Part shown: piece after piece, positions 7,420 through 63,966 of the stretch
Position numbering within the stretch: position 1 is the stretch's first letter
How the letters are laid out: every line of letters begins with the position of its first letter
Assembly (NCBI GenBank): GCA_964035545.1
Contig: OZ037770.1
Span: 10,174,973 to 10,238,972, forward strand
DNA length: 64,000 nt
Source: Bugula neritina
Taxonomy: Eukaryota; Animalia; Bryozoa
Reading direction: 5' to 3'
Position numbers and translations under genes: made by a program
The notes under the pieces: generated by a model
Database searches by the model: none
What the model was told of the DNA's origin: nothing
The model's input: only the letters and a program-made list of their open reading frames with translations

Positions 7420-8460
7420 TTGAAAAGCTAAAGTAAAACTAAAACGGGAAAACTTAAACTAAAAGTAAAAACAAAAGAAAAACTAAAAGCAAAAGGAAAA
7501 AGCTAAGCTTACAGTTTGAGTTACTGAACTGTTTTACACCGTAGGCGTAACACGAACTGTAACTGTAAGTTTAGCCTTTGTCTTTAGTTTTACTTCTACA
7601 GCTACAGTTAGTGTTACACTGTAAGTGTAACACTAACAGTAACTGTAACTGTAAGTTTAGCTTTTGTCTTACGGAGTGAGAGTTACACAGGTTGAGGTTA
7701 CAGTGACTTACAGTTACAGTTAGACTTAGTGTTACACTTACACTAAAACTGATATACAATTACTATTACTATTACTATTAGTATTACTATTAGTATTACT
7801 ATTAGTATAAGTATTAGACATTAGTCATTACTATTACTATTACTATTACTATTAGTATTACTATTACTATTAGTATTACTCTATTAGTATTAGTATTACT
7901 ATTACAAAGCGAACCACAAAACTAATCAACGCTCAATTATATATCACAATTAAATAGTATTATCAATAAGAACAAAAACAACAAAATTATCAATAATAAT
8001 GGTAAATTACACAAGCAGGGTCAAGGTATTAAACTAAAAGTAAACAGTTGATAAATCATAAATGTTTAAACTTAAAGAGAAAGGGGAATATTCTAGCGGA
8101 AACGGAATATAAATATATCACAGCGATTAGTTCTTTAACCTTTTCCGTCCCTATGGAAGCGTCATATCCTTACACAACATGGCCGCACAAGCACTATAGC
8201 CATTGATAACGATACTGATGATAATTTTATGTTCATTAACATGACATTAATTATAATATTACTATTACCTATTACATTTATTATCACAATGCTTATTACT
8301 ATTATTATTGCTAAAACTATTAGTATTACTGTTCTTATTAATGTAGCTATAAGCATAAAGTTATCTTTATAACGAATATCAAAATTCAATATCATAATGA
8401 TAATCATGATATTCAATATGAATATGCTTTTACTTTTAAGTTTTAGTTTTACTTAACAAA
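7420..8460. repeat. Low-complexity tri/hexanucleotide tracts (AAAACT, ACTGTA, (TAC/TAT)n) flanking a short CpG-containing core
   Basis: Periodic sequence seen directly between the divergent BABAM1 and repeat-protein genes. Confidence 0.7.
8090..8190. promoter_or_regulatory. Candidate (bidirectional) core promoter
   Basis: CpG-containing island between head-to-head genes, with ETS-like GCGGAAAC/GGAAGC and YY1-like CAACATGGCCGC (8175-8186). Inference only. Confidence 0.35.
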
Positions 8461-9865
8461 CTAACACTGCTGATTACAGTCACAGTGTGGGTGTTGATGT
8501 TGTCGGAACTGTTAAAATTTAGTATGCAGTCAAAAGTACATATTTTTGAAATCTATTGTAGTTTTGGGCTTTATTTTAATGAGGATATCATTACATTTAG
8601 TTTTACTGATCATAAATTTCATAATGATAATGATAATCTGAAACCATCTTGGCTACATGTATTGATAATGGTGCATGATAATTATAATATAGTGTAAATC
8701 AGAGCTGGGTGAAAGTCATTGCTACTCCAGGTGAATGGCTAGGCAATTCAAGTCGAGCTTTTCTAGTCTAAATCAAGACAAGATACAACTTGAGTCGATT
8801 TAAATAAGCTTGAACTTGTTTTTACTTGCACAACCATTTACTATTTACTAAAGGTTGCATACAATTGATCAGTAGCTAAATGCCTTTAGCATTTAACCGA
8901 AAAAATGGTATCTTTTAATATAGCTATGTCCAAAAAACAATAATCAAACTAAAAATAACTTTGGCAGCAATAAATATAATTTTCAAACACCATTGAAAGG
9001 CACTGATGACTTAATTTATTAAAGCTGTTTCAATTAATGTATATTTGATAGCTAAAGTAATTTGAGTTAATCTTCAGTAAAACTGTATTAAACCAATTGT
9101 GTTTTGTAACAGGTTCATTTAAAATTTATACACTGCAAGTCATTTTAGTCTTCAATCAATATAATACTGAAAGAAGCTGTAATACTTGGTAACAAATCAA
9201 AACTGTTTCATGAATGAAATGATACTGAGTCATTTATAAACATAACTATTATTACACAGTAAAAATAAATAGATATATATGTGAACTACTAACTAGGAAT
9301 CCTAAGTTCTCGCCCCAGGAAGTATTTAAATAATTGTGATTTGGATTCAACTCTGATTTTAATTTAATATGTGTAGCATTCTACAATTATTTACATTAAT
9401 TTTTTAAAGTATTTTTTTGTTTTAGGTTAAGCAGTTAAGCAGTTTAATTTATTATAACTTTTAAAAATACAAACTGTAGGAAGGGGAAATGATTTCGAAT
9501 GTCAGGGTCTCAGTCTCTATCTACTACTCACAAAAGTGAAAAGAGCAAAGATCTTAAATGATTTAGCTGATTAGGGTTCCATCATGGTCTAGCATCTGAT
9601 GATATGTTTAGTTTTCACTACATATTTTAAACACACTTGTGCAAAACTGTCGCCGAAAACTACTGATTATATTTGTGTAGGTTTCTATATTCACTGAAAA
9701 AAAAACTGTGACTGCAATTATTTAGAAATAAATGCAAAATTTTCAGTATCCCATTTTCATTAGTTTGGTTTTCCCTAGTATAGAAAATTGCTAATTACAA
9801 ACTATAACATGTATACTACTTTTTTCCTTTCAAGTATTGGAACTACAAGCATTCCGTGCTCTAAA

Positions 9866-12800
9866 ATGGCCTCATCAAGGATAACCCTTCAAGGGGAAGC
9901 AAATCTAATTAGAAATCGTGGAACTATGGGATCAATTTTTAATATGGAAGACAATGTATCTAATGGGTGAGTAATCACTTGCACTGATTTATCCTTAACT
10001 TTACCTCAATTTATAGATTTTCATTAGATAGTGCGTCACAGCTGTTTGATTTGTATTGATTCTTTATTGATGATATTGATTATTTTGCATTCACATTAAA
10101 TAGTATCATAATATGTTTTTTATTTTAAATTATTATGTAATGATTTTTTTAAATAGGATCAGTTGTAAAATTAGTGTTTTGCTTGTGCAATATGGCAACA
10201 CTTGAATAAATATCCTAGGTAAGACAAAATAGATTAAACATTGCTGATGATAGATGAATATTATAATAAACTCTCTATTATATGTGGACATTAGATAAAA
10301 TTTATTCTTTTCTCCTAGATTTAACATTATTTTAGTTCCAGCACATTATAACTTGAACATAATTTAAATATCACTCATCTGACTGGTGTTGTATGCAGGT
10401 TTATTATATCTACTTGCTATCATTTGTATTTGATAATTATTTAAGTGTGAAGGTCATTTAAAGTTCATTCTCCGAGTTGTTTACATAATAAATATACCAA
10501 CCAAGGTTGAGAGTTGCTTTTAACAGAAGCAGATTGAACTTGCAGGGATTTATATATTTTAGTAATTGTTTTCTCTTTCTTTGAGCAAATATTGCATACC
10601 AAACACATGCCAAAAGTATATTGTTATTAGTAGATCACAACTTATTTACAGGGCAGATAACTCTTGCATTTGTCTTACTTTGTGTCATATTTTACAGTTT
10701 TTTTATAAACCAGCAACATAATCATGTTAAAGAGCTTACTGTTAGTTAGTAACATGAAATACGATTGGAACTGAAAGCCTTTTCAAAGCTATAGACATCT
10801 GTTCAAGTGCCGAGTCCATTTTCACCATTTTAGATATTTGTCTGCTCGTCCCTGCTCGCGTCTGACTACTCAGTCACATGACAACCAAGTAAGGTCAACT
10901 AAGGGCACAATGGAGAAGTTTTTGAAGGCAGATAATAATGTACACCAGGGCTTTGATAGCACTCCATGCGCTAGAGTGACTAACCAATCAGAGCCCAACT
11001 ACATCAAAGGTCAAGGTAAACTTATTCACGGTTAAAATTTTATCTCTTTGCAATCGGTATAATATAACATACACGGACTAGTCATAGTTATACTAGAATT
11101 ATGTCTAGGTTCATGGATTTATCTTATTATTTTATCGCTACTACTACTAGTCAGTAATTCATTGTTTCAAGAGAGAATTTAAATTTAAAAAATGAGGCAA
11201 CAAGACTACTTTCTGTAATAAAAAACTGTTTTAGGTACCATGGCCAAGTGGTTGAACGTTGAAGAGAACGTTTCATCAGGGTACGAATCTGCTCGTCCCG
11301 CACCAAGAGCCTGTCCATCGGAAACATCTCAAGTTATGAAAGAGAAATCCAAAGGTTGGAACAAACATTAACATAAACATTTTTAAATAAAAAATTTGTT
11401 TTATTCGAAATATTTGTGTTATGCATAACAAAGTAGCCTAAATTAACAAATGAACAATAACAAATTTTTGGTCCCAATTGGGATTGTAATAAAACCCAAA
11501 ATTGAAAGTTAAAATTTAATTGATTATACCAAACATTATTAGTTCATCTTTTGTTTGCTCTCAAAATCTAAGTAAATAATATTATTTTAAGGAGTGACGG
11601 GGGGGGGGGGGGGCGGTGGCGTCACTGACGTTTATCCTTTACAAGAATATTTTGCGCTTATACAATATTCTTACTGGGTTCATGTCATTATAACTATCTT
11701 AGAGAATTTGAATTTTGTTATTGAATAACTTTATACCCGTAAACTTGCAAAAATTTGTAGTAAAAATGACTTAGTATTGTGAAAAGCTGTTTGACTGAAA
11801 AATAATGATGAACTTAAGTTACAAGTTTTTCAGATAAAGTTACATGATAAAACAACTTGTACATTTTGGGTTTAGACATATACTATGTTATTTTGTGATA
11901 TATAGTTAATTATTGGTATTATTGTTTTAAATGTGTGCGGGTGTCTGTGCATGCGTACACACGTGGGGTTTATGTATTTATCTATAAACATATTTGTATT
12001 TTATTGTAAATACAGCTTTTAGAATGATAATTTTGACTAGTTTTTTTAGTATTGACTGAAAACTTTAGTATAAAAAGTCGAATTATTTGATTTTTTATGT
12101 ATTATAAATGTGTACCATAAAATAGAACACGTTTTATGTAGCTAGGGTTTCATTAGTTTTTAAGATTGCTTAATTAGCAAAATGTTATTTCAGATAGAGT
12201 AAATAACTCCAAATCTATTTTTGCAAATACGCTTTCTGCTAGTTTTGCATTATATAGGCCTGTATTTTACCTAAAATTTGCATAGCAAAAGGTTGCTAAG
12301 CTTTTGTATTATTCTCACTAAGCCTAGGGCCACACTGTGCGTATTTTCGCATGCGAAAATTGAAACCACAGGTAGCAAAGGTGTCCACTGTAGAGTCAGT
12401 GACGCGTGATAAATAAAGCTTTCATTTTTAAATCGCACTCGCTTTTAATAAAACACAATTTACTGGAATATAGCACTAAAATAAAAGAATTTAGCTCGCT
12501 AAAAACTACCAGCCAATTAGGTGACGACGACAGAGACGATTCGCACTTGCGTTCAGAATGCTGAGCGACAAGTGCAAATGTTTTCTCAACGCATAAAGTG
12601 GACACCTTTGCTACTCGTGGTTTAAATGTTCGCATGCGAAAATACGCACAGTGTGGCCCTAAGCTAAATCTTGGAATCATTTGAATTGATGCTGTACAAT
12701 GAGCAGACGACTCTCATTAGCATATAATATTTCTACCAGGTGTGATGTCAGAGTACATCGGAACCGACTCTGAATACAGATCTCTAGCAATAGAGAAGAA

Positions 12801-15800
12801 GATCCACCCGAGAGGAGTGCCAAGCACTGCCCTAGCCAATTCAGAACCTCACAAAGGTTAGTTGCAGATCCTAAACCGATGTCAGGGAGGGGGGTGGGGG
12901 GCATTTTATGTGTATTGCAAACTGGACTCATGAGCTATGTGGAGTAACATGAACTTCAGCCCCTTACACTTGAACGCATTAACATATATAATCCATAATG
13001 TCTACCTGTTGAAAACAGATAGTCTGTCTGTTATAAATTAAGTGACAGCTGACAGATAATTAATCACAGATTAAGTAAGACAGCTACCTAGGATTCAGCA
13101 ACCAGACTCTCATACAGTAAGAAGGCGTCGGTGGTGTAAAGGTTAGCATTGTTGCCTTCCAAGCAATAGATCCGGGTTCGATTCCCGGCCGACGCACATT
13201 TTTTCGTTCTGTCAAAGTTTACCATGTAGCTGGAACACTTTGCCAGACCAACAAAATGATTTTTGCTATCACTCAGAGATATTTTATTTAGCATATGAGT
13301 TTGCCCTTAAATTTCCCTATTTTACTTGCTGCAAAATTTTAATCAATTTCCTGGGCCAGCTGAGTGGCTCATGGTGGTGCTGCATGCAGACGAATACAGG
13401 GTTGTGAAACTGGTTAACTAGAATCGTTCTATGCACAGCTTCGAGTCTGAGGTGATAGAGTGCACTAGTTCGAAATTTTCGAGTTTGAAGTTGGGGATTT
13501 AAGTTGGAACTTTGCAACTATGCTCTTGCGAGAAAACCTTTCTGTATAGACCAGCGTTTATGTTATGCAGGCTGCAAAACGTAAATTTTCGAATTTGAAA
13601 GTCAAGTCGAGGAACATCAAAAATAATGCTGAATGTAGAAGAGTGAATTTTAAGAGCTTGAAAAGATTTTTGGGCAAACAATAATATTATGAATGTTGTA
13701 AGCATGCCGTCTGCACTTTGAATCACTGCGTTTCCATGAATCCATACGGATGCTCGTACGGATTACATTGAAGGAAAAGCACACATTCCTATGCAATCCA
13801 TACGAAGTTATCTTCTCTTTGCGATTGTGCTAGCTGAATTATAATGTTAATTAGTATGACCAACTTTGAGTCAGTGTTCATGCCCAATGACAATTTAATT
13901 ACCAATTCTGTCCCGATGTTTTATAGATTAAATTAATTAAATACACAAACTTTCAGTCAATTTATTTTAAATTAAAAAAGCATAAACTAATGAAAGCATA
14001 AAGTATTTTGTGACCGGTAAACTAAGTCAAGAGTAATTTAAATTTTTAAAATGAAAATAGCTGTTAATTTATTTTTAGCTTGGGAATGCTTTGACTTACA
14101 GAAAAATCTTATAAATTTAAGATGATTGATAATTATTTTAAATAATAGCAGCTAAGATAAATAAAATAATTTAAATTATGAGATGAAATATACTTTAGGG
14201 TAGGTTGTAACCTATAATTATTGTTTACATCGAGTAACTATGTAACTAGCCGCCACAATCACTGATCTCTGTCCCCGTCACAATAGTTTTCACTCGATTT
14301 AATCGAAGGACACATTTTCATCATTTACATAATGCGAAGGAAATTTTTCATCAAAGGAGCCGTTCGAATGAATTTTCGGCTCCAGTTTTGCTTCCCTGCA
14401 ACTATTTTCATAGGGCAAATAAAAAAATTCATTCGCATAATGCGATAATGGAAACATAGTGCATGTCAGCTAATGAATTAATTTCTCAGAAATAGTATCA
14501 TGTTGTCACAGCTGACAGGTAATTAATCACAGGTTAGGTTTAACAGCTACCCAATGTGAAATCTGTCAAATTTCTGTTTAATATGAAGGCGTCGGTGGTG
14601 TAAAGGTTAGCATTGTTGCCTTCCAAGCAATAGATCCGGGTTCGATTCCCGGCCGACGCACATTTTTGCATTCTGTCAAAGTTTCCCACTGACAAACTTA
14701 AAGTTTTTCAGAAGAACAAAATAGCTTTTTGCTACAGTTGGTGGTATTTTATGTAGCGTATGGGTTTTCCCTGATATTTGCTAGTTTTACTTGATTTGAA
14801 CATATAAATGTTAATTGGAATGGTACTGCATGCAAACGGATGCAAGATCGTGAAACTTTTTAACTATGGTTTCGCCTTTTAAGCTTTCTGCGGACCAGCT
14901 GAAGCCAGGGGTAGTACAAAACCGAATTCATCTTTTGTTGAACAATGTAAAATTTTAAATTTGAAGATTAAACCATTTAAATATATCAAAAGTAATGCTC
15001 TGTATGTAGAAGTGTGAATTTTAAAAGTTAAAAGAACATTTCTTAGCAAACGATATTTTAGGTGCAGTGGTTGGGGAGGGGTTTCGTGTTTGGAGTTGTA
15101 TTCAGTCACCCCCAACCCTGCGCTGCTTCTAAGGGGATTCGATTTTTTTAAAAGTTGTCAGCATGTTGTCTGCAATTTATATGTCAGCTAATGAGTTAAT
15201 CTCTCAGAAATACTAGTATGTTGTCTCAGCTGACAGATAATTAATCACAGGTTAGGTTTAACAGCTACCCAATGTGAAATCTGTCAAATTTCTGGTTAAT
15301 AAGAAGGCGTCGGTGGTGTAAAGGTTAGCATTGTTGCCTTCCAAGCAATAGATCCGGGTTCGATTCCCGGCCGACGCACATTTTTTGCTTTCTGATAGAA
15401 TTTCTGCTATTTATATACGTTCTAGTACAGTCATCTTACTCCAACATTAACTATTTTTTTCAGGACAATTTGCTTTGGCCTTACTAGTTTTATATTAATG
15501 AGCATCTCGTAGTGCCAGTACTTGCAATCATTTTTTAAACTAAGTTTACTACACTGTCATTTCTAGCGCTAAGAAAATGGAAATTGAACGTTAGTTGGAT
15601 TTTTTCTAACACTAATTATTGTTTTTATATACGTTTTAGTGCTATTTTTTGCGTGACTAAATGTAGTGATACATTGAAAATATCAAAGATGTATTTTGTT
15701 ACAAATTTGGTGCTCAGACCTGCCCCAAGACTTTCTGTTCCATGCCAGTTGGGAACAACTTATGTATATACATTTTGCTTTCATGTATATGTTTGCCAGT

Positions 15801-18800
15801 TCTACTTGCTGCAAGCATATAATGTATGGCACCCAGTCAAATAGGTGAAATAATTATCATGCTACATGACTTGTCTGACGGCTTATGTTGGGGGAGAAGG
15901 AGTTTTCTACTAAACAGACACAAGAGTAGAAAATAAAGTATTGTGTAGCCTCTTTTTTCCAAAAGTGACACTTAAGATTCGTACCCATAGCTCTCTAGAC
16001 TGAAAAAACAGGTGATTTATCAACAGCATCATCATGAATGATGCAAGCTTGTAGTCATGCATAGTAAATCATAATTTCCTTTTTTTGATCAGCTACACAA
16101 CCATTTGCTGTCCATGTGATAAGAGTTGTTGCTGTTGACGATTTATTTGAACAGCTAGATTCTAAAACAGGGGTGTCCAGCCTTTTTCAGAGCAAAGGCC
16201 ACTGAAATGGAATATTTTGGTGGTGAAGGCCACATTGTAAAATTTAGCTTGAGCTGGGGATGTCTCAGTAACAGTATTTTTCAAATTAATTTATCCCAAA
16301 TTTCTATGAATCATTACAAGATGAAGTCCCAATAATTACTGCAGGCTGCATGCTTTTAGTATGTATATAAACAAGATATTTAAAAGGTGGTTTTTCCACT
16401 CTAATTCGTATGTGTGGGCAAAATAATTTTATTTGTTGTGCCTTTGAGGGCCACATGAAATATGTAGGACAGCCCTGTTCTAGAATATCTGTTTCAAAGA
16501 TCAGCAATGTTGCATAGCAACAGCTAAAAGGTAGTTAATCGCAGGTAAAACATCACAGCTACTCAATCTCAAACTTATCCAATGGTCAAAATTCAAGAAG
16601 CGTCGGTGGTGTAAAGGTTAGCATTGTTGCCTTCCAAGCAATAGATCCGGGTTCGATTCCCGGCCGACGCATATTTTTTTTCTATATACCAAAATTGTTC
16701 TCCAGGTTACTGAATACTTGATAATGTTTTAATATATTTATATGCGACCTTGATTTACTTTCAAATGTTTTACAATCATCAATAAGGCTGTAGTGCATGC
16801 GCTTTAATTATACTAATTTGAGACTGATTGTCCAGTAGTAATGTGAGTTATGTAAAGCTTGCAGTAATTAGCAAAATCAGAAAATCTCTGTTATTTTCTG
16901 AAATCACGCTTCACTTTGCAACATCTACTTCATAACTCTATCTGACTCACTGACTCACTGACACTCTTTTTCTTCAGTATAGGAGTCATAAATAACTATA
17001 TTTTAGTGTTGCAAGTTGATTGCTATTGGAAATTCAAAAATTGTATGCTTTTCTCTGTTGTGATCAACGCATCATTGTAAAGCATGCTTTTACTTAACAA
17101 AACTAAAATGTAAATCGTTTTTAATATATAATTTTGCTTTAAGATACAAATAATGAACAAATCTATCTCATATAGTTTTGAATTATTTAAACCATGTTAT
17201 TTATATGTGTTTAAAATAGTAAAATGAAAGCTTAGCTAATTGTGTTTCAATATAATTATATTATAACTATACCACTAGTTAATTCAGCGTATTGTCATCA
17301 TACTGCAGGTAAGAGAATGGAAATGATTCTGCATTCAGCCGAGAAAATGCCGGATTCGCCAAAGCGGTGTGGCCGTACTATTAAACCCGAGACTGAGCAC
17401 ATTGCAGCCCGTCATCAAGGTATTTCTTCAACCACTTTTTTTCATATTATTTTATGTTGTATTGTTTTATATTATGTTATTTTACATTATTTTTTTTTAT
17501 ATCATGTTATTTTATATTATACTATTTTATATTATTTTCTATTTTGTGTTATATTATTTCATATTATATTATTTTATGTTATATGTTTTTTGAAATATTC
17601 TTCTATATATTCTATTTCTATATTCTATTATTTTGTATTATATTCGTTTAAATGTTATGTCACCGAGGCGCAGATATTTTATCATGTTGTATTATTATTG
17701 TTACGTTTCATAGGTATTCATTATTTTAAAAGTCACGTTGACCGAAGTTTTCCAACTCCACAATTTGGAGTTATGCCACTGAAATATTCACCTCATTTCA
17801 GAATATTTTATATATCGTTTCCATGTGATGTAGGAAAGCCAGTGGCTAATTTGATAACCAACTATGGTTGTTTGGGGATGTCAGAACGAGCCCCTAGAGT
17901 CACTGTGTGGGGGGAAGAGAATATGGCTTTGGATCGAGGGGGACGAATGAAAACACTAATTGATGAGCAGCAAAGGTGAGAGAATACAACTCCTGTGATG
18001 TGATATTTTCCTTACTGCACTGCTTTTATTACAGCGTTAGATCTAAGAGCTTACAGTCTGATTTTAGTATATACAGTGCTCCTTCCGTAGCTCATAAATC
18101 CCATAGGTCACAAGAAGGGCTTGGGCCCCGTTTTGTTGCTTATATTTGTATGCATAGGGACAAAATGGTCGACTTTAATGGATCGGTGACGTGAATTAAG
18201 TCTAGTGTTCCACTATGTCACGAATTGAGGTTTCGAGACACGTAGCTTAGTGAGATATAGAAGGAGCACTGTACAGCTTAGTGAGATATGGAGGGAGCAC
18301 TGTATAGCTTAGTGAGATATGGAGGGAGCACTGTATAATAATTGCTAATTCGACGAACTACAGACTTGTACAAGCAACAAGCTCTTTGATAGGCTGATCT
18401 CATTGTATTACTCACAGCTGCCGGCATCAATCTCGCACTAATGTAGTTATGCTGAGAATAATATTTAGATGAACAAAAAATTACCACAAGATATTAGGCG
18501 TCCCAGACTATAGACATTTCACAGATTTTGTAGCTTTTTTGACGATTTTACGTTCTCCATATTTTTATTCATTTCGAATATAAGTAGGCTGTCTATTTCT
18601 AACAGGGCTGTATTATAGCAAATGTATTTGTCTGGTACATATCTTCTGATGAACATGCTTAAGAACTTGCTAGTAGCATTCCTAAGGACATATACTGGTT
18701 CACAACGTAGTGTAGCGAAAATAATATTAGCAAGCAAATATGAAACTTCAAGGAATTTATTACAATTCCTACTATAAATATTAACTTTAATGGTAGTATT

Positions 18801-18975
18801 TGTCCAATAACAACATATCTAATGTTTTAGACCTCGGACTGTTTGGCCAGCAAGTGGGGCGTTACCAGGACAACCCTCTACATATTCCATCACTGGAGAC
18901 CAAATCTATGGAACACGAGTAGATAATTACAACAGGAGAAATGGGACCCAATGGGACCAATCATGGAAGGCCTAA
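9866..18975 (+). CDS. Uncharacterised tandem-repeat protein (~305 aa, ~7 repeats of 35-40 aa)
   Basis: Exons 9866-9966, 10834-11015, 11235-11354, 12740-12856, 17309-17419, 17834-17975, 18831-18975 (918 nt), all GT-AG and phase-consistent, ending ...QWDQSWKA*. Internal repeats: GTMGSIFNMEDNVSNGYLSARPCSR / GTMEKFLKADNNVHQGFDSTPCAR / GTMAKWLNVEENVSSGYESARPAPR. The true start may lie upstream (open frame back to an acceptor at ~9834). Confidence 0.8.
12322..12664. mobile_element. PIF/Harbinger-type MITE, TAA target-site duplication
   Basis: TAA|GCCTAGGGCCACACTGTGCGTATTTTCGCATGCGAA...TTCGCATGCGAAAATACGCACAGTGTGGCCCTAAGC|TAA; ~70-bp near-perfect TIRs. Confidence 0.88.
13125..13196 (+). tRNA. tRNA-Gly(TCC), copy 1
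   Basis: 72-nt cloverleaf: acceptor GCGTCGG/CCGACGC-A, anticodon arm GTTGC-CTTCCAA-GCAAT, T-loop GGTTCGATTCC, followed by an oligo-T terminator. Confidence 0.97.
13724..14461. mobile_element. Non-autonomous DNA transposon with short CACT(G/A) TIRs
   Basis: Left CACTGCGTTTCCAT, right ATGGAAACATAGTG (12/14 inverted match). Absent from the paralogous unit upstream of tRNA copy 3 (empty site GCATGTTGTCTGCAATTTAT|ATGTCAGCTAATGA). No clean TSD. Confidence 0.65.
14589..14660 (+). tRNA. tRNA-Gly(TCC), copy 2
   Basis: Identical to copy 1; CATTTTT terminator. Confidence 0.97.
15307..15378 (+). tRNA. tRNA-Gly(TCC), copy 3
   Basis: Identical to copy 1; CATTTTTT terminator. Confidence 0.97.
16168..16477. 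mobile_element. hAT (Charlie-like) MITE
   Basis: TIRs CAGGGGTGTCC / GGACAGCCCTG; 8-bp TSD TTCTAAAA versus TTCTAGAA (7/8, NTCTAGAN-type site). Confidence 0.8.
16600..16671 (+). tRNA. tRNA-Gly(TCC), copy 4
   Basis: Identical to copy 1; TATTTTTTTT terminator. Confidence 0.97.
17435..17705. repeat. Degenerate (TATTT/TATTA)n low-complexity tract
   Basis: Pentamer periodicity inside intron 5 of the repeat-protein gene. Confidence 0.8.
18074..18333. mobile_element. Tc1/mariner-type MITE, same family as 1203-1440, inverted, one end triplicated
   Basis: TA-CAGTGCTCC... ending in three tandem AGCTTAGTGAGATATRGARGGAGCACTGTA units; the internal sequence is the reverse complement of the 1203 copy. Confidence 0.82.
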
Positions 18976-19593
18976 CATTCAAGTTTCATTACTACATATT
19001 TTATTGATACATTTTTCTATACAAAAATGACCTAAATTGAGGAATTGCTGTATTCTTTTTTATGAGTTACCTCTACTGTGTATATGGGTATCACAACTCC
19101 CAATGCTACCTGATATTTCAGCATTTAACCTTTTTCATTTATTCAATCTCTAATAGGTGATCTCTTGCCATGTTTTTGTTACTTGATTACATTGTGCTGA
19201 TAACTCTTAAAAAGAACTGGATCTTTGTGTAAGGCTGTTAGAACAATGCTTTGGTTTTGGAAATGTTCAGTTAATATAGTTCAGCATGTAGCTCAGCAAT
19301 TCTTAGGTTATTGCTAAGGCTTTCTATAGTTAAGAATTATATTTGTGCATCTGAATGGGTGTTAGTATTTATCCGCTAACCATGAAGGCGAACATGATTT
19401 AACTTCTCTCTGATGACTTAGTCTTTGGTGTTGCTATTTTATTTGTAGTCAGATTTTCTAATTATCTTCTTGGCTATAACTATCAAAAAGAGTTTGATTT
19501 GTAAATTTTTAGGCTATTTCAAAATTTCTCTGTGAAAAAATTGATGATTAGGAACCATAATGCTAATATTGGGCTAGTATTTTTAGTATGATA

Positions 19594-20754: not shown

Positions 20755-23700
20755 TTAAACGTCACTAATCATATTGGAGTAAATGGTTCTTTTTGGTGCT
20801 GGAAAAACTAGTCCATAGTTTGCTTGATGTCCTGAACTTATTGGCCTTTCATTAGAAGTAGCCCCATTCACAGGATGCTTAGCATAGGCTGGTTGGACTC
20901 GTGACTGGACCACCCGTGAAGTGTCACTTGCAGCCAGTTCATGGTTTGGCCGAGTGGTATATTGTGCTTTGCTACTCATTTTTGGGTTTACTGCGGAATC
21001 ATTCTGGTCAAAGAAACTATTTTGGTTATTGTGATTACCATTTCTATGCCGATGGTTATTAAGCATCTGAGTTGCATTCATCTTCAAAGCAGCCGATTGT
21101 AAGCTTTGCTGATACCATGACTTCTCAGAAGGTGAGCCGTTTGTATTGCTATCATAGAAGTTCCCTCCGTATCCTGAATCCAAGTTGGAGCTCGAACAAA
21201 TAGAAGTAGAATCCACTACCGTGGTATGATCGCTGCTCGGTTCATGAACTGATAGACTCCGATGAAGACCTGGTGTGGTTTTCTCAGATTGCTTAGCAGT
21301 TACTCTTTGCGCAAATGCATCATGGAATGAGTGTGTGGTATTCGAATAACCGGGTGGAGTCTTGTTATACAGAGGAGGTGGTTGTCGTGTAGGTTGCCCG
21401 GCCCTGTTGGATTGTATTTCTTCATAACTCGGTAGGGGAGCACGTCTCTGACTTTCAGCCACACTTGTAGAGGCGGTACGCTGTGGTGGGCGTGGTAAAG
21501 AAGAGGTTGCATATGATTGGTTTGTGGGCGCTGCAGAGCTCAATTGGCTTTCCTTCTGAGAATGCTGAGCGCTGCCATTAGCATAATGAGAGAATGGAAG
21601 TGCTGTTTGCCTCTGTGGTGGCTGCTGCACAGCATCTTGGGACTTGTAAAAGTTAGAACTTGGATCACTGGATGAAGATAGTTTAGGTTTATTAAATAGT
21701 CGATTCAAGCCGTTGGGATATGGTGCAGTATTCAAGCTCTTTGACGGGTCTTCAAACACAGGTAGCACATCCGATCTATGACTATTGTAGCCTTCTGTTG
21801 GTTTAGAGGTATCAGATTTGTTGCGTGCCAGTAGCTCATTCCTTGTATTAACAATTGTTTCTCTCAAATCGCTTGTGTTGTCATTTCCGTAGGCCAACGG
21901 CTTACTACTAACAGTAGCCGGTGGTGGAAGATATGGTGGCTTTCTAATGACTGAAATGGACTGATAGCTAGGTAGTGGCGGCTTTACATTTTCTGAGTAT
22001 TTGTCATCGTGACCTCCTATAGGTGTTTCACGCTTACCAGGATGCAATGCCTGCTCCATTTGAGTCGAACTCAAACTAGAAGTTGGTGGCTGATCCTGGG
22101 CTATCTCTTTAGACTTGACTGAGTCATCATAGTGAACCGATTTCACAGGTTTTCTCAGCTCTATAGCCTCATTTCCTATGTTGAAAGCAACTTTAGAGTC
22201 ACGGGGTAAACTATTGGATCGACTGACTGCATACTTTTTGACATCAAAGTTTCCCGACAACCTTGGCTGTCTCAGCGCTGACTTCAAAGGCATAGAAGAT
22301 TTGTGGTCTGGTTTCTGCTCAGGTCTTTTATGACTTTCACGTCTACCCAGCACCCGGTCAATGATCGGTTTACCGTTGCCGGTTCTCGTGGCAAATGACT
22401 CTGATCTGTGATTAGCCTGAGGTACTTCATTGTTCGACGTATTAGTTTGAGGAGTACTTGGTGAGTCACAACCTGTATCAGTCCTAGAGTTTTCTTCATC
22501 TAAATGATCTCTGCTAACCCATAGCCCTAAAACAAATTGAACAACACATTATTTTGACATCCAACAATTGATAAGACTTCCTCTTACTAGAAATATATAC
22601 AACCAGAAATATTTTTATTATAATAATGACAAAACATGAAACTTTATACAAAGGCTATTGATTTATTCATATATATTCAATATACTAAAGTTTTTTTACG
22701 ATGTCACTTTAATTTACTAAGTTGAAGGCTAAATATGATCAGATGGTATAAATATAGGCTAAATAAGTTTTCTTCAGTAAACTACTCACCAGGTATTTGC
22801 TTCTTAGCTGCCTCTGCAATAATGTAATTATTGTTTTCTGTAAATTTATCAGAAGATAAAGCTTCCACATGTATGCCAGCACGAATTCGTTTTCTTCTCT
22901 CTCGAATCTATAGAAATAATAGACATAAGTAATAAAAGCAACACACTTTCATCTAAGGTTACTCAATTATATTTACTATTTTTAGATAGATTTCCTAGTA
23001 GTGTTCTCTTACTTCTTCATGGTGTTTTAGCATCTTCAACTCCTCCATGGCAGCTTCTCTAGATTTAAACGCTCGCCCATGAAAGCTGTACTCGGAGTGA
23101 GTGAGAGTCTCATCAGATCGAGATCTGAACAGTCTGGGAGGAGGTAAATAGTTCTCAGAGTTCATTGTCTGTGTAAACAGAAATAACTAAATTATAAAGT
23201 CATCAAGTAATACGATGCAGTTTTGGGAGCAGCCGTGGCCTAGAGGTTAGAGCGTTGGCTTAGTAAATATGAAGTCATGGATTCAAACTCCAACAAAAGC
23301 CACTGGTGATGTTAGAAAGAGCATCCAGTTATAAATGCTCTTGTGCCTCATATGAATAAATCTTTAGCATGCTTTTAAGAAACCTTTTCTATCAAGGATT
23401 TTTCACAGGGATGGTGACTATAAACTTGCATGAATTGTTTATGATACAGTGCCGATTCAAGTTTACCGCTAAGACTAAACTGTTCATCAAAAAAAGTTGT
23501 GAAGTTGGAAAGCTACAATTATTTTTTTTCTTTTACTAGGGTTCGGCTAAACTATTTGGCAATGTTAAATGATGACAATCCCCCTTACTAAAAATCGAAC
23601 CTCAGACTTTTAACTTGTAAGCATACACTATGGGTGCTACTGGGGAGTCTCAGCCAACACGTATATCAAACACTTGTTAAAGTTTATAAGAAAACATGGT

Positions 23701-62956: not shown

Positions 62957-63966
62957 CTATAACTTTTTCCCAAAATATTTGGGCCAGCCAAAGTTTTTTC
63001 CAATGAGCTCTTCAAGTTTCTTATTATAAGGTTGAAAGTGATTCTGGAGAGAGGACAACAGCTGGGGAGACAACTCCGGATGCGCCCTACCTTTGGTAGA
63101 CTTGTCCATGCACCATTTGGAGTTGTCTGATGACCGAAAGCAATAGTACCCTCTTCCTTTATCATAATACACATTTCTGTCGGTTACACTACCAGGCTTG
63201 CCTAGAAAGTCTGTCACTTTGTTGATTTCTACTAAGGGTTGGGTGATGAGGTCCTCCCCGCTGATAAATATCATCTGCTCTAGTGGAAAGAACTCAAGCC
63301 ACTGCGACACAAAGACTGAGTACTTCCCGCTTTCAAGAAATGGCTGAGAGGGTCGCGGGTGCACATTCTCTATCAGCTTCCCGTCCTTAAGTTGAATTAT
63401 ATCAGAGAACGGTGGCAATGGGTCTGAGCCATCTGGTAGTTTGTATGAGTTTATATGAGAGTACAGAGAGACTAATCTCTTCACTGGGTCACACAGTACC
63501 ATGATTATCTTCATGTCTAGAGTAATTCAATAAAAACATCATTTAGAATTGAGTTGAAAAAACTAACAATATAATTAATTGCACTTGTCAATGGTAGTTG
63601 TAGTGACTAACTATAAAAGAGTAGCATAAACAAACTACATGTTTAAACTTGGATAGTTCAATTCCACCAATAGGATTTCTTAATACTAATTTCGCTTATA
63701 GTGAATCAATCATCCTTCAGGATCCCATATATCCTGTTGATGTATTTAGCTTATACCACTTTTCAGACATATTTTTCTTTCAAAATTTCAATGCAGTGTT
63801 ATTTATTTTATAGAATCACTTCTTCTATGTATTCCACACGAGTTTGAAAACTATACCTTGCTTTGTTTGATGCACTCTAGCAGGTACTTGTGGGTTCCAC
63901 ATGTATGGAGCACATTTCTCTATCAACACCTGACTAGTGCTGACAGGTGGCATCTGATCAATGTAC
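62957..63966 (-). CDS. Heparan sulfate glucosamine 3-O-sulfotransferase-like, last two exons (5' part outside window)
   Basis: Exons 63857-63966 and 62957-63516: YIDQMP...LIEKCAPY...VPARV...KIIMVLCDPVKRLVSLY...WLEFFPLEQMIFISGEDLI...RGYYCFR...WCMDKSTKGRAHP...FQPYNKKL, matching the HS3ST/NDST-type sulfotransferase C-terminal half. Confidence 0.88.

Follow-up and report, generated by a model that had tools for sequence, protein, structure and literature searches.

A transcribed seven-exon gene of a bugulid bryozoan and the unnamed spiralian family of predicted tandem-repeat proteins to which it very probably belongs

A basic, disordered, and periodic character is shared by many microtubule-binding proteins. 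The SAXO/MAP6 proteins (PF05217) are basic and disordered and carry short tandem modules at a spacing of roughly 30 to 40 amino acids (aa); the Tau/MAP2/MAP4 and Jupiter/JPT proteins are likewise basic and disordered, with tandem units of 31 to 32 aa in tau; and the nebulin-type filament rulers are basic and built from a module of 35 aa. Here, we analyzed a stretch of 64,000 nucleotides (nt) from an assembly listed as Bugula neritina (GCA_964035545.1, contig OZ037770.1, forward-strand positions 10,174,973 to 10,238,972; hereafter the window), in which a gene at positions 9866 to 18975 is predicted to encode a 305-aa basic protein built of six to seven units of 35 to 40 aa. Although its charge, disorder, and tandem spacing resemble those of the above-mentioned proteins, its module sequence differs from that of SAXO/MAP6, the SAXO/MAP6 profile does not match it, and its N-terminus is not Cys-rich; it has no Pfam match to Tau/MAP2/MAP4 or to Jupiter/JPT, and besides showing no sequence or Pfam similarity to the nebulin-type rulers, it contains only six to seven units. 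The start of the exon 1 unit, NRGTMGSIF, resembles at the level of the motif the "...NR/K-M-A-S-N-I-F..." that Jupiter/JPT carries.

Part of this system is already known, because the gene is predicted in GenBank for sister species and a paralogue, CGI_10028829, was flagged in 2020 as spiralian specific, being listed in Supplementary Data 1 among 37 C. gigas genes with spiralian-specific motifs (Wu et al. 2020, PMC7441323). Genes passed that screen if they were detectable in molluscs, annelids, and flatworms and undetected in every outgroup and in nr, and the paper gives neither a name nor an expression pattern for CGI_10028829 (PMC7441323). The protein of CGI_10028829 has the same unit as the window protein (G-x-M-x2-L, then S-P/A-R-P-x-P-R-V-K-P-E-A), is basic, and has no Pfam domain; however, it is a paralogue and not an orthologue, with 389 aa, a long non-repeat tail, and introns outside the repeats. 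The oyster paralogue that was found by our bryozoan profile at an E value of 1e-10 looks almost the same as the printed CGI_10028829 when the two sequences are compared visually. An identity with lophotrochin or trochin was also considered and was rejected, since the alignments in the supplement (PMC7441323) are unrelated.

Gene structure, transcription, and orthologues

The initial annotation of the window had read seven small exons in this region, spliced to 305 aa with repeats of 39, 37, 40, 39, 37, and 35 aa. A three-frame scan of positions 9700 to 19100 with inspection of the junctions bore this out, as the seven exons on the plus strand (Table 1), with lengths of 101, 182, 120, 117, 111, 142, and 145 nt from exon 1 to exon 7, sum to 918 nt, which is 305 codons and a stop. 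All six introns, of 867, 219, 1385, 4452, 414, and 855 nt, begin with GT and end with AG, and their phases are 2, 1, 1, 1, 1, and 2. Introns 2 to 5 each cut a Gly codon after its first base (G/GT in three cases and G/GA in the last, the slash marking the splice site), and intron 1 cuts a Gly codon after its second base. Exons 3, 4, and 5 are symmetric (phase 1-1) with 40, 39, and 37 codons, and each of exons 2 to 6 has AAG at its 3' end. Thus, the four consecutive phase-1 Gly introns and the single symmetric repeats of exons 3 to 5 that had been claimed were found as described. The remark that the gene was hidden from the list of open reading frames (ORFs) was fair as well, because the sole long ORF at the locus (17242 to 17979) stays open by chance across exon 5, the T-rich intron 5, and exon 6. 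The DNA of the window is AT-rich, with a GC content of about 0.29 to 0.38.

The locus is a transcribed and spliced gene. In the contigs of two RNA sequencing (RNA-seq) libraries from a "symbiont metagenome" study, the exons were covered and the introns had a depth of 0, and the RNA contigs joined 9966 to 10834, 11015 to 11235, and 11354 to 12740, each across a GT..AG intron, whereas a DNA run spanned the same stretch without those joints. The junction check by RNA-seq that the initial annotation had proposed therefore showed that introns 1 to 3 are skipped exactly at the predicted sites. The RNA joints cover junctions 1 to 3, and junctions 4 to 6 rest on collinear exon-by-exon profile matches and on the orthologue proteins described below. 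Exon 2 has two in-frame GT donors at its 3' end, separated by 6 nt, at 11009 and 11015 (AAAG/GTCAAG/GTAAAC), and the RNA contigs use only the distal one at 11015. One RNA contig of 572 nt runs 266 nt past exon 4.

A word search with exon 6 led to a 306-aa "uncharacterized protein" of Watersipora subatra and to EB796_005972 of Bugula neritina, with E values of 6.5e-22 and 2.8e-21; the latter is a 276-aa "hypothetical protein" at GenBank locus VXIV02000840.1. Both proteins align collinearly with the seven exon peptides and span all the predicted junctions, and when the profile of these two proteins was run against the window's own genome, the seven exons were matched in order, tiling profile positions 1 to 307. 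A word search with the Watersipora subatra protein found only itself and EB796_005972. The window gene is the orthologue of both.

By comparing the window with the GenBank B. neritina locus, we found that the exons are 94 to 99% identical and the introns 85 to 89% identical with many indels, and that 272 codons differ by 23 synonymous and 4 nonsynonymous changes. Because synonymous changes outnumber nonsynonymous ones to this degree while the introns are only 85 to 89% identical, the gene is under purifying selection. The window represents a bugulid lineage close to, but distinct from, that of the GenBank B. neritina assembly. The EB796_005972 model ends in ...GQPLHIP and lacks the conserved C-terminal tail that is common to exon 7 of the window gene and the Watersipora protein, and its last exon has probably been miscalled. 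Since the 3' end of EB796_005972 deviates from both the window gene and the Watersipora protein, the 305-aa model is the better one in this region.

Repeat units and the family

Pairwise local alignment of the exon peptides gave significant scores for exons 1 and 2, 1 and 3, 2 and 3, and 1 and 6 (z of 5.3 to 9.2, with none of 500 shuffles reaching the score), and the peptides of exons 4, 5, and 7 gave no significant pairwise alignment against 500 shuffles. A hidden Markov model (HMM) of the repeat, which the initial annotation had recommended, was built from the relatives; it describes a unit of 35 aa with the consensus PRVKPEAE-x2-A-x3-KG-x-RM-x2-L-x3-YG-x-LP-x-SARP and finds units in relatives across phyla. 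In the Watersipora protein and in EB796_005972, it scored three units each (residues 165 to 264, 22 to 47 bits), which match exons 5 and 6, while other family members had between four and seven. In an alignment of 58 units, the R, E, G, and R columns are near-invariant, and the motif is also visible by direct reading of the exon peptides of the window gene. The units of exons 1 to 3 represent a second flavor, G-T-M-x2-L-N-x3-N-x2-Y-x-S-A-R-P-x-P-R, and both flavors stand side by side with intermediates within some relatives. Exon 4 is not scored by the unit profile and was placed as a repeat by its "...YIG...IHPR" variant, which recurs at the same place in five relatives from other phyla; because of this recurrence across phyla, the array with its differentiated units is old. 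Exon 7 encodes a tail and not a repeat.

The family was collected by an exhaustive HMMER search of 1.84 billion representatives with a profile made from the Watersipora protein and EB796_005972, which returned 72 proteins at E values of 1e-3 or below, 35 at 1e-10 or below, and 2 at 1e-30 or below. The best two matches (3.1e-51 and 6.0e-37) each form one collinear stretch. Every member with a named source is spiralian and is labeled "uncharacterized" or "hypothetical"; these named members come from the bivalves Ylistrum, Mizuhopecten, Mytilus, Mactra, Ruditapes, Saccostrea, and Crassostrea, the gastropods Biomphalaria and Patella, the chiton Liolophura, the brachiopod Lingula, the flatworm Macrostomum, and bryozoans. 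A word search with the family alignment found only further uncharacterized mollusc proteins.

None of the searches for a characterized family gave a name. Pfam returned nothing for the seven exon peptides and only chance-level matches for both orthologues and 48 family members, a feature search of the ESM Atlas gave no usable match, and a literature search by gene identifiers and motif strings found no papers. The view of the initial annotation that the protein is unrecognized and cannot be assigned to a named family is thus upheld for names, domain models, and solved structures alike. From the shared unit and profile matches, we are highly confident that CGI_10028829, EB796_005972, and LOC106155590 belong to one unnamed conserved family and that the window gene is a member of it.

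Two further sets of members were observed. The window's genome holds a second family member on another contig (C3, about 2700800 to 2704000, minus strand), whose canonical PRVKPEAE...KGKRM units are distributed over five or more exons. In Lingula (LFEI02000031.1), two paralogues of 307 and 490 aa, both intronless, lie about 18 kb apart, and the range annotated for a P5-type ATPase gene includes the larger one.

The isoelectric point (pI) of 21 family members ranges from 9.1 to 10.5, with 5 to 13% Pro and few hydrophobic residues. AlphaFold was run on the chain alone, as had been suggested, with the database orthologues standing in for the full-length window protein. With an alignment of only two sequences, the model was uninformative, with a predicted local distance difference test score (pLDDT) of 35 and a predicted template modeling score (pTM) of 0.11. 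With 30 sequences, the mean pLDDT rose to 62 (70 to 85 in the C-terminal units) at a pTM of 0.22, and each unit was modeled as two short helices, the first acidic and the second amphipathic, which are separated by a Gly and followed by an extended basic Pro/Arg linker. Because of the pTM of 0.22, we read no globular fold from the model, and the predicted protein is an unfolded-looking, non-globular chain in which Pro/Arg linkers join short helices.

Possible binding partners

According to these general properties, we propose that the chain of units would run along a periodic polymer and place one unit on each subunit, that the units would fold upon binding, and that the polymer would most likely be the microtubule lattice. 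The character that the protein shares with many microtubule binders makes binding to a polymer plausible; binding to microtubules in particular, which is inferred from such general properties, is possible but doubtful. The explanation as a whole, comprising the gene, the spiralian family, and binding along a periodic polymer that would likeliest be the microtubule lattice, is put forward tentatively and at somewhat less than even confidence.

Several observations weigh against this proposal. Scaffolds and nucleic-acid binders can likewise contain repeats that are basic and disordered. The Pfam models of SAXO1-2, JUPITER, tau, and nebulin matched none of the exon peptides, the orthologues, or the 48 family members. 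When PDB chains were searched by phmmer and hmmsearch with the Watersipora protein, the unit profile, and the family profile, no match fell below an E value of 0.7 and no cytoskeletal chain was found. Foldseek gave 0 matches for the 30-sequence AlphaFold model, as is expected for a non-globular model. With a strict X-box consensus allowing at most one mismatch, no site was found in positions 8300 to 10900 (-1.5 to +1 kb of the ATG), a search of limited power because it was anchored on the ATG and not on the transcription start; with a loose consensus, one-mismatch matches occurred in this region at about half the window-wide rate. Additionally, 18 of 20 tested genes with spiralian motifs were ubiquitously expressed, and the paper does not say whether CGI_10028829 was among them (PMC7441323).

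The protein might instead be unrelated to the cytoskeleton, acting as a broadly expressed scaffold, regulator, or nucleic-acid binder whose repeats serve multivalent weak binding. Its basic and disordered nature and low hydrophobic content would suit such a role, as would the broad expression of most tested spiralian-motif genes (PMC7441323) and the absence of cytoskeletal family matches. However, the unit length and motif are strictly kept across phyla, which fits a periodic partner better than generic multivalency, and the Pfam scans contained no RGG, KH-like, or other nucleic-acid motif. We regard a non-cytoskeletal role as a real possibility, although not one that we expect to be correct.

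The initial annotation had suggested that the protein may be an invertebrate axonemal protein with a SAXO/MAP6-like spacing. In this reading, it would be a microtubule inner protein inside the ciliary doublets with one repeat per tubulin period. The period of 35 to 40 aa, the basic pI, and the extended non-globular prediction agree with this suggestion, and all spiralians have motile cilia. Two flatworm relatives from Macrostomum also bear the UniRef names "Microtubule associated protein SPM2" and "Microtubule associated protein 6"; the names are automatic and a lead only, the similarity could not be reproduced, and the SPM2 papers offered no sequence features that could be used to test the SPM2 name. 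However, the SAXO1-2 profile matched 0 of 48 members, and over the window's genome, it matched only a locus on another contig (C2, 1833141 to 1834946, plus strand), exon by exon, with a best score of 35.3 bits, above the curated cutoff. Since the PF05217 match is confined to this contig, the real SAXO gene of the genome lies elsewhere and is not the window gene. In addition, no PDB chain matches although many ciliary inner proteins have been solved, and the region around the 5' end contains no X-box. The protein sequences show neither the Cys-rich N-terminus nor the S/T-x-Y-x3-F/Y modules of SAXO proteins. The corresponding search of the window's genome with JUPITER (PF17054) found nothing and was uninformative, because the controls were silent too. 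The SAXO/MAP6 assignment was therefore not borne out, and we consider it very unlikely.

A thin-filament or other filament ruler, nebulin-like in principle and with one 35-aa unit per actin subunit, would agree with the 35-aa length of the canonical unit, which is that of the nebulin module, and with the basic charge. Nevertheless, neither a nebulin Pfam match nor an SDxxYK-type motif was found, and six units would cover only a short stretch of filament, which makes a ruler the most improbable of the partners considered here. Binding along a periodic polymer, most likely the microtubule lattice, remains the reading that we prefer.

Intron history and surroundings of the gene

The exon-per-repeat layout itself was confirmed by our analysis, but the conclusion of the initial annotation that this layout marks growth by exon duplication is insecure, because relatives carry the same array uninterrupted. 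In scallop, chiton, and both Lingula genes, the coding sequence contains the same array without any intron, so that either the array predates the bryozoan exon pattern or introns have been lost elsewhere. The two introns of the oyster paralogue leave its repeats uninterrupted, and the Macrostomum paralogue has three introns, one of which falls in phase 0 at the Lys-Gly boundary within a unit. Biomphalaria has two introns, one in phase 1 in a Gly codon at a non-homologous place and the other in phase 0 between K143 and G144; this second site aligns to Gly174 of the Watersipora protein, which is the site of the bryozoan phase-1 intron 4, so that the two introns are one base apart. In the second family member of the window's genome, introns lie at three different positions of the unit, only one of them in the Gly codon (phase 1) and the others at PR/VKPE and KP-E.

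Two histories fit these positions: an ancestral exon-per-repeat gene with wholesale intron loss in several lineages, or repeated intron gain at one proto-splice site. AAG/G and AG/GT are the classical proto-splice site, and the conserved Lys-Gly codons of the unit spell exactly these sequences. In the second history, which concerns the evolution of the gene and not its function, the exon-per-repeat layout would have arisen by repeated insertion at the AAG/G of the Lys-Gly codons rather than by duplication of intron-flanked exons. The uninterrupted arrays of scallop, chiton, and Lingula, the AAG ends of exons 2 to 6, the Lys-Gly introns of Biomphalaria and the flatworm, and the scattered introns of the bryozoan paralogue all argue for it. 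On the other side, an ancestral exon-per-repeat gene could have lost its introns wholesale in molluscs and brachiopods, for example by retroposition, and few genomes were sampled. Because of the one-base phase difference at the orthologous site and the scattered paralogue positions, we lean towards intron gain, while giving it an even chance overall. A combined reading, in which the family would consist of spiralian-specific microtubule-lattice or ciliary binders with one helix-Gly-helix-linker unit per tubulin period, and in which introns would have been inserted in parallel at the same Lys-Gly proto-splice site in successive repeats, is unlikely in our estimate.

The coordinates of the exons, of the features within the introns, and of the neighboring frames are collected in Table 1. 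The element in intron 3 is 345 bp long with terminal inverted repeats of 72 nt that are 92% complementary, and its summed contig depth, in both the DNA and the RNA-library runs, is about 1e5, compared with about 100 in the flanks; it looks like a miniature inverted-repeat transposable element (MITE). The same intron contains a tract of about 17 G that is interrupted once, and one DNA contig has an extra G there. The four tRNA genes of intron 4 are spaced by 1464, 718, and 1293 nt, each of them is preceded by a conserved 47-nt element that ends about 35 nt upstream, and several copies are also present at the GenBank B. neritina locus. Downstream of the gene, a 532-aa open frame with a GTG start has no Pfam match and is located where the GC content is higher (0.385) and the GC skew strong. 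Near the end of the window, another open frame matches the sulfotransferase domain PF00685 (E value of 6.3e-17, profile positions 92 to 250) and is probably an exon of a neighboring sulfotransferase gene.

Table 1. Exons of the tandem-repeat gene and other features of the window (positions within the 64,000 nt)
Feature	Coordinates	Strand	Description
Exon 1	9866..9966	+	Start codon, N-terminal lead, first half of repeat 1; ends GG, phase 2 in Gly; profile positions 1-37
Exon 2	10834..11015	+	Second half of repeat 1 and whole repeat 2; ends G, phase 1; profile positions 35-101, E value 2.6e-34
Exon 3	11235..11354	+	Exactly one repeat, 40 codons, phase 1-1; profile positions 96-136; RNA joints on both sides
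Intron 3	11355..12739	+	Hosts a high-copy inverted-repeat element
G run	11597..11614		In intron 3
Inverted-repeat element	12321..12665		In intron 3; looks like a MITE
Exon 4	12740..12856	+	One divergent repeat (YIG...IHPR variant), 39 codons, phase 1-1; profile positions 136-176; RNA joint 11354 to 12740
Intron 4	12857..17308	+	4452 nt; hosts four same-strand tRNA-Gly(UCC) genes
47-nt element	13042..13088		First of the copies upstream of the tRNA genes
tRNA-Gly(UCC)	13125..13197	+	In intron 4
tRNA-Gly(UCC)	14589..14661	+	In intron 4
tRNA-Gly(UCC)	15307..15379	+	In intron 4
tRNA-Gly(UCC)	16600..16671	+	In intron 4
Exon 5	17309..17419	+	One repeat, 37 codons, phase 1-1; profile positions 164-213; junctions inferred from GT-AG sites and orthologues
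Exon 6	17834..17975	+	One repeat and start of the last one; ends AG, phase 2 in Arg; profile positions 211-267
Exon 7	18831..18975	+	Pro-rich tail with conserved C-terminal aromatic-x2-RRN-x-T-x-W motif; stop TAA 18973-18975; profile positions 259-307
Open frame	20755..22353	-	532 aa
Open frame	62957..63514	-	PF00685 match; probable sulfotransferase exon

Spiralia comprise about eleven phyla, and to our knowledge, very few conserved proteins that are specific to spiralian lineages have a known function. The family described here has persisted since molluscs, brachiopods, bryozoans, and flatworms diverged, and its sharply conserved 35-aa unit has neither a Pfam model, nor a solved structure, nor a name. 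With a defined unit, two flavors, and a C-terminal motif, the family can now be searched for and tested. Meanwhile, the single-exon relatives and the exon-per-repeat layout of the bryozoan gene, whose introns fall on the Lys-Gly codons also used in a snail or one base away from them, together offer a compact case for weighing intron gain at proto-splice sites against exon duplication with intron loss.

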